Part shown: one piece after another, positions 10,837-23,641 of the stretch
How positions within the stretch are numbered: position 1 is the first letter of the stretch
How the letters are laid out: every line of letters begins with the position of its first letter
NCBI GenBank assembly: GCA_001949185.1
Contig: BDGG01000002.1
Location: 4,516,448 to 4,580,447, forward strand
Direction: 5' to 3'
DNA: 64,000 nucleotides
From: Ramazzottius varieornatus
Taxonomy: Eukaryota > Animalia > Tardigrada
Program-made: the position numbers and the translations under genes
Notes under the pieces: model-generated
Databases searched by the model: none
Seen by the model: only the letters and a program-made list of their open reading frames with translations
Told to the model about the DNA's origin: nothing

Positions 10837-11807
10837 TTACGTTGTCTTTGGCTGTTGTTGGAATCCAATGACGCCGCAAGCCAGGCGACCGCCAGCGCTT
10901 CCGGTCTTCTTGCTTTCTGGAGTGTTTCCTCGACCAAGATCATCGGCTTTCTCGTGGACAACGACGCTGCGTCCGATGATGCTGTTGTTTCCGGAGAGGG
11001 AAAGAACCATGTCCGTCAGATCGACCGTCACTTTTCCACTATCTACAAGGACAAAACGTTTGACTAGAAGATCAATCGAAATTTCAAAATTTGAGTCAGA
11101 AAGATAACACAGAAACCGCAACGAGAAAGAAAAGTTTTCTCCTTCACCACATATACTGTAACTTTCAAGATTGTAGTAACGTATAAACTTACCATCAGCT
11201 TCGACGTTGCCGAGATCGCCAACGTGACGGGTAGAGTCGTCCTTATCGCCGTGCGTCTTCTTCTCCGGGTTGTAGTGGTCTCCGGCGGAAATGCAGCCAT
11301 TGCTCAAGTCACCTGCAAGGAAAAAACCCAAACGTTCGAGCTGGAAACCAGGAAGTTTCTTCATATGTGAAAGGCTGAAAGCATCGACGTACCGAATTCG
11401 TGAACGTGGAAGCCATGTTTGCCTATGGAGGGGAAAAGCAAGTTCTACGCAACATTGTCAGTTTAGTAAGCAAAATCCTCGAGGAGGTTCAGAGTCCTGA
11501 GCTTCATACCACTACGAACCTGGCTTGAGTCCTGCCAAAAAATAACACGGGTCAGTTGCAGACGACAAGAAATGCGGCAGTGGTTCCATTGTTTAACGAT
11601 GGTTATGTACTCCGACGTACCTGTAATTTCTCCGGTGATCTTGACGGGAGAATTCATGCCGTCTTGGGCGAAACGGATAGTCCCTTTGACGTCGTTCTCG
11701 TTTCCAGACATGACAGCGATGGCTTTCATCTGGGCAGCGGAAGAGCGGTGCAGCAGAAGGAAGCCTCCCAGGCACAGAAAGACGGTTGCTGCTGTAAGAC
11801 GAGCCAT
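10837..11807 (-). CDS. Secreted Cu/Zn superoxide dismutase (SOD3-like), 5 exons, 184 aa
   Basis: Exons 11807-11621, 11531-11520, 11422-11393, 11312-11193 and 11042-10837 total 555 nt in frame. Signal peptide [24 protein letters not shown]. All ligand motifs are intact: [54 protein letters not shown]. Confidence 0.96.
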
Positions 11808-15434: not shown

Positions 15435-18091
15435 TTATGCGCGACCCAAAATGCCGCAACTGATGGGTTGTCCCATTCGCATGCCTGGCGCCATCGTGGG
15501 TCTTTTAGACATTCTTTGGAATCGCCTGCGCATACCCTCGTCTCTCATCCGACCCGCGTAATTCGCGTCCACGGGCATGAGACGATCAGGTCGGATTATA
15601 GTCACTCCCTGGACTGCAGCAGTACTAGTATTATTGACCGTCTGGTAGGTGGTACCACTACCATCAGAGCCGCTGATATCGAGACCGTAGACTCCTGTAA
15701 CGATAAGCCAGCCTTTAGTGAAATTCCACACGCCGAGTGTAGTGCGATTTTACAAGAATGCACATATTACCATCCACGGGTTGTCCAGCAACAATTTGGC
15801 GCTTGTTGCGTCTGACACCATATACTGGTCGGATAGCCACGGTTCGTCCATACAGATACCTCGGGTTTCCGCAAGCAGACTCTTCGGGGATGTAAAAGTC
15901 AAAGTTTCCGCGTCCGTTTTCTAGGAAAAGAACCGTGTTTTCCATTCAGACTTTAGACCGAACGGAGCTACAGTAGCATTGACTGAGGTCTCGAAAAAAC
16001 TGCTAAACGTCGACACAGAAGTCAACACCTACCGTCAGTCACGAAGGTTCCGATGACGGCCCCGTTGTAGTCTCGTGCATCACGTCGGCTGGCGGCAGCG
16101 CTGAGAGGACCAGTCTGGCGCTTGTTGCGTCCACGGCGTCCATCTGTGAAAACAAGGAGCATCGTAGTACTGGATAAAGTCGGGGTCCGGGTCGAAATGA
16201 AACGCGCAGCTTCAGCTATGACGTCTTGCACTTGGGTCTCCGCAAGCTAGCGCACTGCATGCTTACAAAAACCTAGGTAACACTTACCGCTTCTAGGCAC
16301 CATTGCTTCCATCTCCACCGGTTCGTAATTGACATCGGGGAACCCTATGAAGCTTGTTGGTTTGAAATGCAGCGGGAGAAATTTTAGGCCAGTACTTCCT
16401 TAGAGCCCGAAACTTAGAATTGCGGAGACCCACAGACTCTTATCCTTCTCGTTTAACGCGCTGTATTTTCAATACGGACCATTAACTGTCAGTGGAAATT
16501 CCCAAGCCCGACGGGTGGATCTTACCTCGTTCTCGCGGTACGTAGTTGTCACCCAAGTACTGTGTGTATCCGGTCGTTACATTGCTTCGTGGGTTAACCA
16601 CTACCACATTGTCAGTCGGGTATCCCGAAACTGGAACGTAGTTGACGGGAACGTAGCCACCGTTATAGTAATTGGTGTTAGTGGTGGCATTGACTACTGT
16701 TTGCAAGGGCAAGAACTTGACGTTGCTTTCATCATTCTGGGTGTTGTTCTGATAGACCACGTGGTCGTTGTTACCAGTTCCCCGAACAGAAACTGGGTTC
16801 AGCTTGTTGTACACTCCATTGGGGTCGTTTCTGTAGTACGAAGTATCGTTACCACTGTAGTCGACGCCGGGAATGAAGAAGGCGACGTTACTGGGTAGAC
16901 CATTCTGATTGTACCCTTGACCAAAGGCTCGTGCTCCGCTGTAGTAAGTTTGGTTGGTGCCATCCTGGTTGACCACGACATAATTACTTCCGTTGGACAC
17001 AGGCTGCAGAACTGCGGTGTTGCCACCACGACCGTAGTTGCCGTACCCGTAGTTGCTCGGGGCGTAGTTGGTGTAGTCGGCTTGGTAGTTGGAGACTGCG
17101 ACCGGTACTGCGTTTTCGATAACGTATGCGGTGGCACCACTAGTACTACCAGTGTTAGTGTTCCCGTTGGGATTCGCAACGCCAATGATGGTACCGTTAG
17201 AGTCGACCAATGCGTGTCGGATGTAGTTGTCACCGGTAGCTTCCGTGTTGACTCCTCCCACGGGAATGTTGCGAAGTCGCATACCCTGACCCAGCTGCGA
17301 GCATCCGCCACTCATGTCACCGAACTGATGGAAGGTTAGGACGTAAGTCTCCGCTACAAAACGACATGCGATTAGCTGGAGAATGTGTATAGGTTCTTGA
17401 TATCCAAATAGAAATTTCAAGAAACGATGATTCAACGTGTCACCGGGTGGACCTATATTTTTCGGCTTTCCTTACCGGGAACAAGAGAACTGACGTTTCC
17501 AGACACCATATAGCCAGATCCGTAAGCACTAACTGGGTAGACAGTGACCACGATCGATCCAGAGCCGCGGTTCCTCATTCGGTCAGCATCACGGTTCCTC
17601 ATTCGGTCAGCATCACGGTTGCGCGATCGGTCAGCATCACGCTTTCCACGGCCACGGTAGTTGTCACGCGAGGTTCCATCGACCACCGCAGTGGCGGTCG
17701 CTGTCGGGACGGCATAGACCACTCCGTCGCTTCCTCGGACATACTGCACAGCTGTGGAACCGGTAGCTGTGGTTCCAGTAGATGTGGTACGTACACCAGT
17801 GTTGTCTGCATTCGTGTTCGTTACTACAACGGTGTCGACGGGGATTGCGGCGTCCTGGACCACGACTAAGACGGTGGTAGCGTCGATGCTGTACGGGGTG
17901 GTGACAGTCACGTTGTTAATTCGTGTGACCGGTGTGACGTAAGCGCCAGAACGCCTGGTTATAGGGGAAAGGAAGACGACTAGGGCCACTATAAGGATAA
18001 GAAGGGCTAAAGTAGAAAAGACTAGACCGTGCTGGCATTTGGTCGTGGTGCTCATTCCTGCGCTTCCGCTCGAATACGTATCACGAGCCAT
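15435..18091 (-). CDS. Type II membrane-anchored, catalytically dead Cu/Zn-SOD-fold protein with three large furin-site loop insertions (~673 aa, 6 exons)
   Basis: Exons 18091-17476, 17353-16526, 16344-16288, 16143-16033, 15920-15771 and 15694-15435 total 2022 nt, all GT-AG and phase 1. SOD motifs appear in order: GSIVVTV..YMVSGNVSSLVPAETYVLTFHQFGDMSGGCSQLG / GAVIGTFVTDENGRGNF / YLYGRTVAIR / GQPISCGILG*. Confidence 0.85.
17568..17639 (-). repeat. 24-bp coding tandem repeat x3 (DADR[S/M]RNR)
   Basis: CGGTTCCTCATTCGGTCAGCATCA repeated on the + strand, directly after the RGKR site in the protein. Confidence 0.85.
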
Positions 18092-18868: not shown

Positions 18869-21800
18869 TTAGTTTTTCATAACTTCATCAATCCACGCTT
18901 GATACTGGCCAAGATTAACAAACAAAGCCGGCATACCGCCTTGACCACATTGGATACCGGAGACAATAATACCAGCTAGCTGGGACGTGCCTCCCACAGA
19001 GCAGATCAGCGGTCCGCCACCATCCCCGTTACATATGGTTTGTCGTCCAGTGGCGCTACCACACATGAAGGACGTGGTTTGGAACTTAAAGCCGGGCCCT
19101 AGAGGCGAATTTCTTAGACGATAAGCGCATTCTTGATTGGGCCATATTCGCGTCGTTATTCGCTTCAGCCGTGATGAAAATGGGAAATCTGCAGCAAACA
19201 AACAATCAAGTATCTCTCTATGAGGAATATTCGAGGCTCTGTACGACGCACTTTGTCCAAGTTTGCCCCATCCGGAGGCCTGGCAGTTCATCCCATAGTA
19301 GTCGATCTGTCCAGGTCGACATACGAGGCAAATGTTACTCAGACTGATATCAGCCGGACGGTTCAATTTCAGCATAGCGACGTCGTTCTCGAGGGTCTTT
19401 GGATTGAAGCTGGAATGTATGTACAGGTTGAAGACCGAGTAGTCGCGAGGTCCCGGTATTTCCGTCGTCACGTTGAAGTCCCATTCTCCCAGCCGTACTG
19501 TGATGTCCATAGGACTTCGCCTGTTTGATGAAGAATAGTTAGGGTTTGCGATCCGCGCTCAGTTCAGTAATCGCATGGACTTACTTCGAGACACAATGGG
19601 CGGCAGTCAGGAGCCATATTGTATCGATCAAGACTGCTGAACAGAAATAGTTTCCGGAAGATCGGTCAAGCAGTGCCGCCTAACAGCAATAAATTTCTCG
19701 GTTTTCAGTCTGGATTGGATCCGAGCATAGCGAGAAACGTGGATAACAAACCTGCCAGCAGTTTTCTCCAACGTCAACGAAATCCGGGTCCGACACACCA
19801 GCTTCCGGAATGGGCATACCGTTAATGGCCGCCGAATATGCGCCACCATAAGCCGGAGCAGCTGAGCCCCTTCCCTTGACACCACATTGTCCATTGACCG
19901 AGTTCCTTGTGTAACAGCAACTCAGTTCTGGTGACGAGCAACCGTACAGCGACACTTCCATATTGTACATGGAGCAGTTCCTGGCCGCGCTGTTTGGCAC
20001 ACAGATACCTGGATGGTCTTGTATCACGCACTTGTTGGCCTGATCCAGTGTGAACGAAGACTCCCTGTCCAGCTCGTTCGTCGGAGTAAAACAGCATAGT
20101 TGGTCCATTCCACATCCTCCAACCCGAGTGCGGTAGCCCATCTTCACGCAGGACTGCACCATATTTCGGCTTATACAGGAAGCTGCTTCACCCCGACCTC
20201 CACACATCCCACCGGCTGGTTGAGATTGGATATTGCTGGATGACGCCTGGAAACCTCCACCACCAAGTCCACCTTGTAAGTTCCCTTGGTCAAGATGGCT
20301 GTTGCCGTTCATGTTGTTCTGGTTATTACTAATGAACAATGGCAAGACCGTCTTGATCAGTGAACCAATATCGAAACCCGACGTCATGGAATTCGATGGA
20401 GCAGCGGGTGCTGATTGTCCCGCCAGGGTTCCGATAACTGGAAGTGCAGTCTGAACGGCAGTTTGCACAGGATTCACAGCTTGAGCAGGAGACGGTTGCT
20501 GAATGTTCTGGGCGGAAATGGTGTTTGGTGACAGCAGGGAAGGCAGTTGCTGCATGTTGTTGGTGGCTAACGGAGGAGCGCGACCTTGAGCACTAGGCTG
20601 CTTTGCTTCGAAAGAGATGGCTAGCGGCTCTTCTTTGAGGGAAGAGACGTCAAGGTTAGCTGCAGCGGATGGGTCGGATGAATAGCAGCAGGACTCGGAA
20701 GACTCACATCCGCTAGGAGAGATCTGCATGCCGAGACCTGGACAGAGAGCGGTGAGGGAGGTGGCGACGCAGATACCGTCGAACCCACTGACGGTACACG
20801 CCCTTCGAGCTCGAGCCTCACCAGCCCGGTCTGACGCTGGCGCAGACAGCTCATCGAGCTCGGAACCTTCCATCATCATGTCATCGCCTAAACTTTCTCT
20901 TTTGGGTTTCTTTACGGCTTGCGTGATGGTGTTGACTAGATCGTCGGGAATTCTTGCATTTGGGCTACCTGCGGAGAAAAAGCAAAGTAACAATCGGACA
21001 TTATTAGGGAAGGCTTCACTTACGTGCGCAGCAAATCTGAGGCGAAGGGCAGTTTCCGGGTTCAATCTTCAGATTCATATTTTGACATACACCCTGCATG
21101 GAGGGTGGCATGCAGAATCCCCGCGACCCGTTACTAACATTGCAAGAAGATAGATTGGACGCGGCAGCTTGCAGGCTTCCTAACATTGCCGGTGAGATCT
21201 GCGAAGTAAGGGACGGTGGAAGCGTGTTGGAAGGAGTCGCCGTAACCTGAGGTCGTTGCTCGATGACGGGGGCTGGAGTGGTTATGGCAGCCGTCAGCAA
21301 CCCATCGATCAGACTGGTCGCAATGTTGGTGGGACTTTGTGCTTTAGGAGCGGTAAGGGTACTCAGGATCATACTTAGGACATTCGGAGGAATGTTGCCG
21401 GTAGTCTGCTGCATTTGAGACTGCATCACATTGCTCAAAGTGTTTTGAATGGGGTTGTTGGATTGAACGAAGGAACCGCCACCGACTCGGCTAAACTGAG
21501 CCAAGTTCTGAGCTGGGGTATTGTCCGCCATGGCTGTGGAAGGCTGAGAGGGTATAAAACCAGTAGGAAGTGCGTTCTGGTTACCCAGAAAATTTTGAAT
21601 GTTCTGCTGTTGGTTTTGGCTGTTCAGTTGACCAAGACTGTTGGGTTGTTGGTTCTGGGCGCCGAAAACGTTGGGTTGCGTCATCGATGACGACGCCATC
21701 TGGGGGGACTGGTTCGCCATCAGCCCATTCTGCATGCCGTCCAGCGAAGGCGGCTGTTGCAGACCACTCATGGCTTCTGGTGCTCTTCGATAACAGCAGA

Positions 21801-23641
21801 CATCACGAGTCATGGTCTGGAAGTTTATGCATCCGCCGTCTCGGATTTCATATCCGTACAGCTGGCAGACACCTTGGAGGGAGACTGGCATGCACGAACC
21901 TTTGTACCCGTCGACGAAGCATGGCTTGGTCTCTGGCAAATGAAGCATCCCTCGTTGTTCGCAAGAAAACTAGTGATGCATTGATTCAATGAGTTGCTTA
22001 CCTTTACTGACAAACTCGGCTGAAGCCTGGTCTTGTCGGAAAGCATTAGAGTCGGGCTGAGCATTGCCGCCAAGAATAGAGTCGATTCTGTTGGATCCCA
22101 TCATGGCTGAAGGATCACTCCCCAGGTACGATTTCAGCATGTTTTCGGTCGAAGAAGAGGATTGTCCATTGAAGGACCGTACAGAACCGAAGGACTGCGA
22201 TGGCGAGCTACCGGAACCTAAAGGAAAAACATACCGCATGGTCCTCTTCATACAAAGAATGGAAGCAAAAGCAATGTTGGCATACCTAACAGCTGTGCCA
22301 GCTGCGCGTTACGGTCTGGGGCTGATGAAAATCCGCTTGACGAACCTTGGTCAGAGTATCCCGAATTCATGTTGGAAAGGGCGCTTCCAAGACCTTGAGA
22401 GTTCCTTAGTCCACCGCCCAACTGCTGTAGCGATCCCATAGACTGACTGCCTCTCACACTTTGCAGAAGATTTGCCAGTGAATTCGAATCCATTTGTGAG
22501 TTACCACCCCCTAAAACAGAAACTCGGCATTAGAGCTGTCAAGATTTTATTTCTGGCAATATCTGATTGGAATTTTTGACTGATATCTTCAGCACGCAGA
22601 AAAAACTAGTAATCTCCAGTACACAAAGAACTAAAGATAGCGTGAAACCAGTATTTCGATTTTCGGGACTGCTCGAAACAGAATGTAATTTCGCTCGACA
22701 CCGCTAGCCAGGTAGGACAATCTGTGCCAGTTTTGAGATCAATCCAGTAAAAACTTCGCCCGGCTGGCCATCATCACTCCGAGCCTCACCTCCAAACTGC
22801 CCGCCAAACTGTTGTCCTCCGTTTCCCAGGGATGCCGCCAAGCTGCTAAGTTGAGAGCCGCCTCCGCCGCTCAGGAGACCGTTCAGACCATTGCCGGAAC
22901 CGCCGCCACCGGCGCTGTTCAATAAACTACCGAGACTTCCGCCTCCCCCGCTGTTCTGCAGCAGTGACTGTAGATTGTTATTTCCACCACTGTTTTGCAA
23001 CAGGGAACTCAAGCCGGTCCCTCCACCGTTTTGTAGCAACGAGCTCAAGCCATTCCCTCCACTACTACTCTGAAGTAAGGAGCTCAGGCTATTTAATCCG
23101 CCCCCGCCGCCACTCTGGAGCAGTGAAGTGAGTCCGCCCCCTCCACCACCGGAAGAGCTGGATAGTAGTCCCGAAAGCTGGCTAACGAGAGCGGCGTTGT
23201 TGCCTCCGCCGCCACCCAGGGAGCTGAGTCCTCCTCCACCGCCACCGAGAAGTCCTGATAGGGCGCTCCCGCCTCCACTACCGCCCCCTCCATTGCTCGC
23301 GGATAACAAGGGACCAACCATCGATAGCAGAGAGCCTATGTTCAAGCCACTTCCGCCTCCATTTGTGCTACCTGTGAATAAGGTCTATCGTCGTCATTTA
23401 GATTTATTTTAAATTGATAGAAAATCTGCATGATTTGTCCATGATATCCGATCGATGGAAAAACACCTATAGTGTCGTATTTACCTGCTGATCCAGTGAG
23501 GGCTCCCAGACCGCCGCCACTTCCGCTCAGCATGCCCAACAAGGGCATCAGACTCTGCAAATTGATTTGCCCATTCACGAGTAGCCATGGCACACAAATG
23601 ATTAGACAAAAGAATTTAAGCTGGATATTGAATAGCTGCAT
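18869..23641 (-). CDS. Masquerade-like clip-domain serine protease homolog (five clip/disulfide-knot motifs, inactive trypsin domain) with Gly/Ser/Leu-rich N-terminus, ~1329 aa
   Basis: Nine exons (23641-23485, 23371-22790, 22510-22286, 22217-22002, 21932-21024, 20968-19752, 19679-19585, 19520-19252, 19188-18869) total 3990 nt in frame. Signal peptide and five C..C..C..C..CC motifs. LLTAAHC and ENDVAML are intact, but the catalytic Ser is Gly (CNGDGGGPL). VRLGEWD and RLRNSPLG are typical of clip-SPHs. Confidence 0.85.

Follow-up and report, generated by a model that had tools for sequence, protein, structure and literature searches.

What does the gene RvY_04937 encode, at positions 15435-18091 on the minus strand of a 64,000-nt window of the Ramazzottius varieornatus genome, and how is this hypothetical protein related to the intact Cu/Zn superoxide dismutase (SOD) that is its neighbour? 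An earlier note, made from the sequence alone, had read the locus as a SOD barrel that is anchored in the membrane and interrupted by giant loops. We find that RvY_04937 is likely a lineage-restricted, single-copy and transcribed descendant of a tardigrade extracellular Cu/Zn SOD, repurposed as a non-catalytic scaffold, and the proposed descent from Cu/Zn SOD is borne out by collinear profile matches and shared intron positions. Throughout, the window is the whole 64,000-nt stretch analysed, coordinates are positions in it, SOD residues follow human SOD1 numbering, and genome scans cover the R. varieornatus assembly (55.8 Mb, 200 contigs).

Gene model and SOD homology

The joined translation of RvY_04937, in which all introns are in phase 1, is identical over its 654 aa to database protein P0009, "hypothetical protein RvY_04937" of R. 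varieornatus, a record without a precomputed Pfam domain; that automated annotation would use this label had been correctly foreseen. The gene coordinates given in the earlier note are exact, and the six exons and 673 aa proposed there are revised to five exons and 654 aa, the length of P0009. A HMMER scan of 1.84 billion representative sequences with exon 2 reveals a sole relative, the 609-aa protein P0001, which heads a 90% identity cluster from a sister species, with five full-length members on 2.0-2.2 kb contigs and three short members on genomic contigs. The full-length forms (609-611 aa, 58% identical to RvY_04937) read uninterrupted through all four RvY_04937 exon junctions, and the short members are exon open reading frames (ORFs) that run into introns where introns 1 and 2 of RvY_04937 sit. 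Long members that read through, together with short ORFs that stop at exon ends, indicate that the 2-kb contigs are spliced sister-species transcripts, which supports the exon model. The search for orthologs proposed in the earlier note thus returns one sister-species cluster, beyond which protein and genome searches find no homologue or paralogue; RvY_04937 is single-copy in the genome and so far restricted to two species, and its identifier was not found in papers or supplements.

Profile-profile comparison recovers a clear relationship to Cu/Zn SODs. An alignment of RvY_04937 with the five sister-species forms was compared by hhalign with one of 70 diverse Cu/Zn SODs, and aa 194-231 align with SOD columns 35-71 (E 8e-6). 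For the uncut protein, the best three local matches place aa 193-234 on SOD 29-69 (P about 1e-7 to 8e-6), aa 646-653 on SOD 144-151 and aa 512-549 on SOD 85-120, and these are collinear and non-overlapping. When the SOD segments are cut out they score 41.6, 17.6 and 21.5, against maxima of 18.2, 16.1 and 16.6 over 60 column shuffles, so that each lies above 60 of 60 shuffles. The FHQFGD..GC block accounts for the highest of these scores (P 1e-7), while the strand 5-7 block with GRTVAIR matches SOD 85-120 with P 0.01 when cut and 0.15 at full length, and the C-terminal ISCGILG matches SOD 141-152 with P 2e-4 and 0.018, respectively. Deletion of the inserts, as suggested in the earlier note, gives a profile that aligns with SOD over residues 19-152 (E 4e-10 to 1e-8). 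The stalk, the big insert and loop VII, taken as negative controls, show no SOD signal (P 0.36-0.58).

The motif-by-motif alignment first proposed therefore stands for the FHQFGD..GC block, the strand 5-7 block and ISCGILG, and is not upheld for the first five residues of its fourth match; pairing RHVGD with YNGAV brings no score gain, and 30 of 60 shuffles are as good. A joint MAFFT alignment of RvY_04937 with the 70 SODs wrongly places SOD strands 5-7 on the insert, and was set aside as input for structure prediction because it would mislead the predictor and make the test circular. Our own hidden Markov model (HMM) built from the 70 SODs scores P0009 at 12.0 bits and P0001 at 14.5 bits, compared to at most 5.3 bits in 200 shuffles, and the aa 176-232 region at 10.8-12.0 bits (shuffle maximum 5.3). 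This signal is real but falls far under the gathering score of Pfam Sod_Cu PF00080 (28.9 bits), which explains the "hypothetical" label.

Intron positions tell the same story. The neighbouring SOD gene encodes a spliced product of 184 aa with all ligands and a cleavable signal peptide, with no convincing gene between it and RvY_04937. Its phase-1 introns fall in the Gly codon of L-K-P-G and the second Asp codon of E-A-D-D, those of an unlinked SOD on contig 15 fall at L-R-P-G and Y-V-P-D, and exon-wise HMM matches show both positions to be typical of the SOD family in this genome. In RvY_04937, the Ala codon (A206) of L-V-P-A is split by intron 1, which shares its HMM column and phase with its counterpart in the neighbouring SOD. 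Intron 3 splits the Glu codon (E519) of V-T-D-E, shares its hhalign column and phase with the EAD^D and YVP^D introns, and has a counterpart that is near-universal in the SOD family of this genome. Since every intron in RvY_04937 and its neighbour is in phase 1, the positions alone count as evidence. RvY_04937 probably originated from a duplication beside the intact SOD, at a distance of 3.6 kb. The neighbouring gene also appears to contain a 12-nt micro-exon (11520-11531, minus strand) that encodes L-K-P between two phase-1 introns and seems to be needed, since the conserved G-L-x-x-G turn before the HxH motif would otherwise be lost.

Table 1. Features of RvY_04937 and the neighbouring SOD gene, in window coordinates
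Feature	Coordinates	Strand	Evidence
Whole gene RvY_04937; five exons, 654 aa	15435..18091	minus	GT-AG sites; collinear with intron-free sister-species transcript P0001
RvY_04937 exons	18091-17476, 17353-16526, 16143-16033, 15920-15771, 15694-15435	minus	GT-AG borders
aa 22-41: single hydrophobic segment (putative signal anchor)	17969..18028	minus	Top Kyte-Doolittle window; 90% identical in sister species
aa 42-175: Thr/Val-rich stalk, RGKR site (17639-17650), three RDADRxRN repeats	17567..17968	minus	Composition; 56-57% identity
aa 176-232: SOD strands 2-4 and disulfide sub-loop (T212, H214, C223), intron 1	17274..17566	minus	hhalign to SOD 28-63, score 41.6, P 1e-7, 0/60 shuffles
aa 233-256: possible native-length Zn loop remnant ending R251-H252...D256	17202..17273	minus	Score gain; 4/60 shuffles match
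aa 257-505: large Asn/Val/Gly/Tyr/Thr-rich insert, RNKR site (16118-16129), intron 2	16073..17201	minus	No SOD signal
aa 316-430: conserved core of the insert	16680-17024	minus	83% identical in sister species
aa 506-552: SOD strands 5-7 (hairpin IGTFVTD-ENG-, C535, GRTVAIR, R549), intron 3	15820..16072	minus	hhalign to SOD 85-120, 0/60 shuffles
aa 553-635: expanded loop VII, RNKR site (15799-15810), intron 4	15495..15819	minus	No SOD signal; 52-53% identity
aa 636-654: SOD strand 8 (GQPISCGILG; P645, C648) and stop codon	15435..15494	minus	hhalign to SOD 141-152, P 2e-4, 0/60 shuffles; 89% identical
Intact secreted Cu/Zn SOD (comparison gene)	10837..11807	minus	Sod_Cu 110 bits; 3.6 kb downstream of RvY_04937, same strand

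Metal site, cysteines and inserted segments

Only one of the four Cu ligands (H46, H48, H63 and H120) is kept in RvY_04937. H48 corresponds to H214, and T212, G229 and R549 stand in place of H46, H63 and H120, with catalytic R143 replaced by P645 in GQPISCG. The cysteines C57 and C146 are kept as C223 and C648 and are invariant in all six aligned sequences, the disulfide bond itself being predicted. The replacements H46 to T, H120 to R and R143 to P, and the retention of the second His of HxH and of the disulfide cysteines, had been called from the start and are all read from the SOD alignment. Each of these residues (T212, H214, G229, R549, P645, C223 and C648) is identical in the sister species, so that the ligands were lost before the two species separated and the substitutes have in turn been conserved. 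As both species lack three of four Cu ligands together with the bridging His and catalytic Arg, the aligned residues indicate that RvY_04937 cannot be a canonical SOD, with both metal site and catalytic Arg lost, and a non-enzymatic job is most likely.

All four cysteines are conserved between the two species. C535 (E-S-A-C-G-N-P, window ~15870), in the Greek-key loop region, is the third non-cytosolic cysteine and lies near the place of the free Cys111 of human SOD1; the odd number of cysteines on this side means that an intermolecular disulfide could form. Non-cytosolic histidines are limited to H214, H252 and H403, each of which is invariant in the sister species.

The Zn loop is less easily read. 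The equivalent of H63 is Gly, and R. varieornatus has no equivalent of H71, where the sister species has HHGG in place of the H71-G-G of SODs. When aa 233-256 are kept contiguous, R251-H252...D256, invariant in the sister species, meets R79-H80...D83 and the hhalign score rises from 50.6 to 61.2, a gain equalled, however, by 4 of 60 shuffles. We have a weak preference for a model in which a near-native-length Zn loop may survive, with an insert of ~255 aa between this loop and strand 5. The statement that no Zn ligands are recognizable holds for H63 and H71, and is perhaps too strong given the possible equivalence of R251-H252...D256 and R79-H80...D83.

The extra segments comprise ~250-275 aa ahead of strand 5 and a further 93 aa that separate strand 7 from strand 8. 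Of the hugely expanded loops first described, the insert before strand 5 and loop VII are confirmed, and the placement of the insert inside the Zn loop is perhaps incorrect. A Thr-rich loop I expansion of ~95 aa remains unproven, with strand 1 not located; the Thr/Val-rich stretch aa 42-145 may be a stalk, with a shorter insertion, rich in Arg and Asp, leading up to strand 2. Between the two species, identity is 90% in the anchor, 74-89% in the barrel segments, 83% in the insert core and 39-62% in the other linkers. The insert core is thus as conserved as the barrel, which argues that it is more than a floppy low-complexity loop; the proposed scaffold for low-complexity loops is upheld for SOD descent and is too simple a description of the insert. 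The core lies entirely in exon 2, and the insert has no homologue except P0001 among 1.8 billion representatives and no look-alike in the ESM Atlas.

R-x-K-R sites occur at three conserved positions (aa 148-151, 487-490 and 556-559), with the RNKR of loop VII kept as RDKR in the sister species, and several proprotein-convertase P domains are encoded in the genome. Directly after the first site, RGKR, is a threefold tandem repeat, RDADR(S/M)RN (aa 151-174, window ~17570-17640, minus strand), the absence of which from the sister species points to recent expansion. Within the insert, aa 264-290 resemble aa 457-479 (window ~17100-17180 and ~16530-16600), with window scores of 37 and 35 on neighbouring diagonals; both stretches lie largely where the sister-species alignment has gaps, which points to a recent duplication inside the insert. 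Apart from the RDADR repeat and this one species-specific duplicate, no internal repeat in the insert rises above composition-matched shuffles. Two further readings of the insert, as another degenerate barrel and as an amplified hairpin of strands 5-6, were rejected, as the insert carries no SOD signal and its other repeats are at shuffle level.

A bolder possibility, which we regard as somewhat doubtful, is that the 115-aa Asn/Val/Tyr-rich core (aa 316-430) would be a new, selectively maintained module, born as part of a single exon in a loop of a decaying SOD barrel in one tardigrade lineage, the barrel then being cut at three conserved convertase sites into a multi-chain assembly held by the SOD disulfide. 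If true, it would offer a case, open to dating, in which loop expansion in a pseudoenzyme gave birth to a domain.

Topology, structural models and rival explanations

A single hydrophobic segment confirms the N-terminal anchor that had been proposed; its type II topology is an assumption, with ambiguous flanking charges and glycosylation sequons at chance frequency. We consider it fairly likely that the C-terminal part faces outward, an orientation favoured because of descent from a secreted SOD, the mucin-like stalk, the kept disulfide pair and the recurring R-[ND]-K-R-Q motif. In such a protein, the barrel would serve as a rigid, disulfide-stapled scaffold, tethered by the N-terminal signal anchor and the Thr/Val-rich stalk most likely outside the cell or in the lumen, with the conserved core of the ~250-aa insert just before strand 5 as its working surface. 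Proprotein convertases may cut at the three conserved R-x-K-R sites, one following the stalk, one at the insert's end and one within loop VII; this would release the ectodomain and nick the loops, the pieces staying joined via the barrel and the disulfide. The role would be of a binding or matrix type and not catalytic.

Structural models lend weak support to a SOD fold. The nearest structural neighbour of the ESM Atlas model of RvY_04937 is a Sod_Cu cluster (TM 0.62 by that entry), aligned over 169 residues between residues 19 and 654, but the pLDDT of the model is only 0.37. ESM Atlas feature searches with the whole protein and with the insert return no usable match. Co-folding of the two half-barrels (aa 176-256 and aa 506-654) gives a score of 0.47 compared to 0.01 for the best control, with at least 47% of contacts shared between runs and a partner pLDDT of at least 42. 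This support is weak: the mark used is reached by 51 of 78 solved complexes and 2 of 108 mismatches, but at scores of 0.60 or under by only 5 of the same 78 complexes and by all 4 mismatches that passed.

Several results weigh against the interpretation of RvY_04937 as an anchored, SOD-derived scaffold. Pfam searches including Sod_Cu (E up to 10) find no family in the five exons, P0001 or P0009, and a PF00080 scan of the genome (E up to 10) matches ~14 SOD loci and not that of RvY_04937; PDB sequence searches with exons 2 and 5 give chance matches and no SOD. Comparison with the SOD profile does not locate strand 1, although a possible strand 1 lies near aa 131-138. The full-length AlphaFold prediction recommended in the earlier note yields no confident Greek-key barrel, since AlphaFold2 on P0009 with a six-row alignment reaches a mean pLDDT of only 26.5, and Foldseek on this model gives meaningless output. 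RNA support for the exon model comes from the sister species and not from R. varieornatus itself. The flanks of the 20-residue hydrophobic segment are ambiguous, with one Lys before and two Arg after, and sequons number 11 observed vs. 9.3 expected, which makes sequon enrichment uninformative as a test of topology.

These last two observations would fit an inverted protein, with a short N-terminus outside, the SOD-like part in the cytosol and the R-x-K-R clusters acting as nuclear-localisation or membrane-binding motifs, and a long hydrophobic segment that follows a short N-terminal tail can indeed favour N-out insertion. We consider this orientation unlikely: the family is one of secreted SODs, the neighbouring copy has a cleavable signal peptide, the Thr/Val stalk is mucin-like, the disulfide pair is conserved, and two different loops carry R-[ND]-K-R-Q, a motif kept in both species. 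A different concern is that only part of the protein is SOD-derived, an unrelated low-complexity orphan gene having captured a SOD exon block (strands 3-4 and the disulfide sub-loop), with the C-terminal likeness due to chance. The N-terminal block alone is strongly significant by itself, the other two matches reach only P 0.018 and 0.15 at full length, and no fold model is confident, all consistent with such a capture. What makes it the least probable of the readings considered here is that the second and third matches are correctly ordered and correctly placed along the SOD, each above all 60 shuffles, that C648 sits in a CG-IG motif at the extreme C-terminus as in SODs, and that intron 3 coincides with a near-universal intron of the SOD family in this genome; half-barrel co-folding weakly supports the same conclusion.

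There is also a slim chance that the protein is not a dead scaffold but an altered enzyme or metal sensor, with a metal or redox site remodelled from H214 and the conserved H252, D256 and H403. The invariance of the only three non-cytosolic histidines, the alignment of R251-H252...D256 with the end of the Zn loop and the HHGG of the sister species at the H71 position would all fit such a site. Against it, both species have T, G, R and P at the positions of H46, H63, H120 and R143, the RH...D alignment lacks significance, R. varieornatus lacks an H71-like His, and no structural model brings these residues together. A SOD-derived, non-catalytic scaffold thus remains our preferred interpretation of RvY_04937.

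Neighbouring genes and known SOD derivatives

Directly upstream of RvY_04937 lies what appears to be a multi-clip serine-protease homologue (18869-21948, minus strand), in which four C..C..C..C..CC modules with Gln-rich linkers precede a trypsin domain (Pfam Trypsin, 85 bits). Its catalytic Ser motif reads GDGGGP, and the last Cys module gives a sub-threshold match to CLIP_SPH_mas (masquerade-type). At 22704-23345, also on the minus strand, is a 213-aa Gly/Ser/Leu low-complexity ORF with repeated SSLLQNSGGG-like units.

Expansion of SOD genes is often cited in tardigrade stress biology, with 16 in R. varieornatus (PMC5034306). We find that the tardigrade SOD family includes at least one copy that is invisible to domain databases and unable to be a canonical SOD, so that SOD gene counts are not equal to antioxidant capacity. 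To the range of known SOD derivatives (CCS, dominin, Cu-only SODs and CSRPs), RvY_04937 adds a single barrel able to accommodate both an insertion of 250 aa and an anchor at the N-terminus. Found in two species only, it is a compact case for a pseudoenzyme scaffold that gains a new conserved module. Shared intron positions and segment-wise profile comparison here recover homology that is lost to whole-protein searches.

RvY_04937 shares with canonical extracellular Cu/Zn SOD (PF00080) the collinear core motifs, the C57-C146 pair and a C-terminus right after strand 8 and, with the neighbouring gene, two phase-1 intron positions, adjacency and strand. It differs from canonical SOD in having no Pfam match, in keeping one of four Cu ligands and neither the bridging His nor the catalytic Arg, in ~250 aa ahead of strand 5 and a loop VII longer by ~70 aa, and in an uncleaved hydrophobic anchor and stalk in place of the signal peptide. 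The C. elegans SOD-4 membrane isoform is a membrane-tethered SOD, and the glycosylphosphatidylinositol (GPI)-anchored fungal Cu-only SOD5 family likewise holds a SOD-family barrel at the membrane, as is proposed for RvY_04937. These membrane-tethered SODs are active and have a C-terminal tether, whereas the tether of RvY_04937 is N-terminal and its catalytic residues are lost.

Metal-less SOD-like proteins are established in CCS domain II, oyster dominin/cavortin and the Cu-less CSRPs of arthropods and tardigrades (PMC13017621). Domain II of CCS is, like RvY_04937, a SOD-like domain without a Cu site reused non-catalytically in a larger protein, but CCS is cytosolic, is fused to Atx1-like and CxC domains and not interrupted by inserts, is readily found by Sod_Cu profiles and has been conserved throughout the eukaryotes. 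Dominin/cavortin and the Cu-less CSRPs share with RvY_04937 a SOD-derived barrel with the disulfide kept, a lost Cu site and a presumed non-enzymatic extracellular role; unlike RvY_04937, dominin is a compact soluble plasma protein. CSRPs consist of four to twelve tandem compact barrels joined by 5-9-residue linkers; they lack a Zn site, have loop VII shortened and carry either a signal peptide or a GPI anchor (PMC13017621). RvY_04937, with its N-terminal anchor and hugely lengthened loops, has one collinear SOD set, a loop VII of 93 aa and no second SOD signal in its inserts. These features, a lone barrel together with lengthy inserts and an extended loop VII, exclude it from the CSRPs. With metal-less SOD-like proteins already known, RvY_04937 is best filed among the SOD-derived pseudoenzymes.

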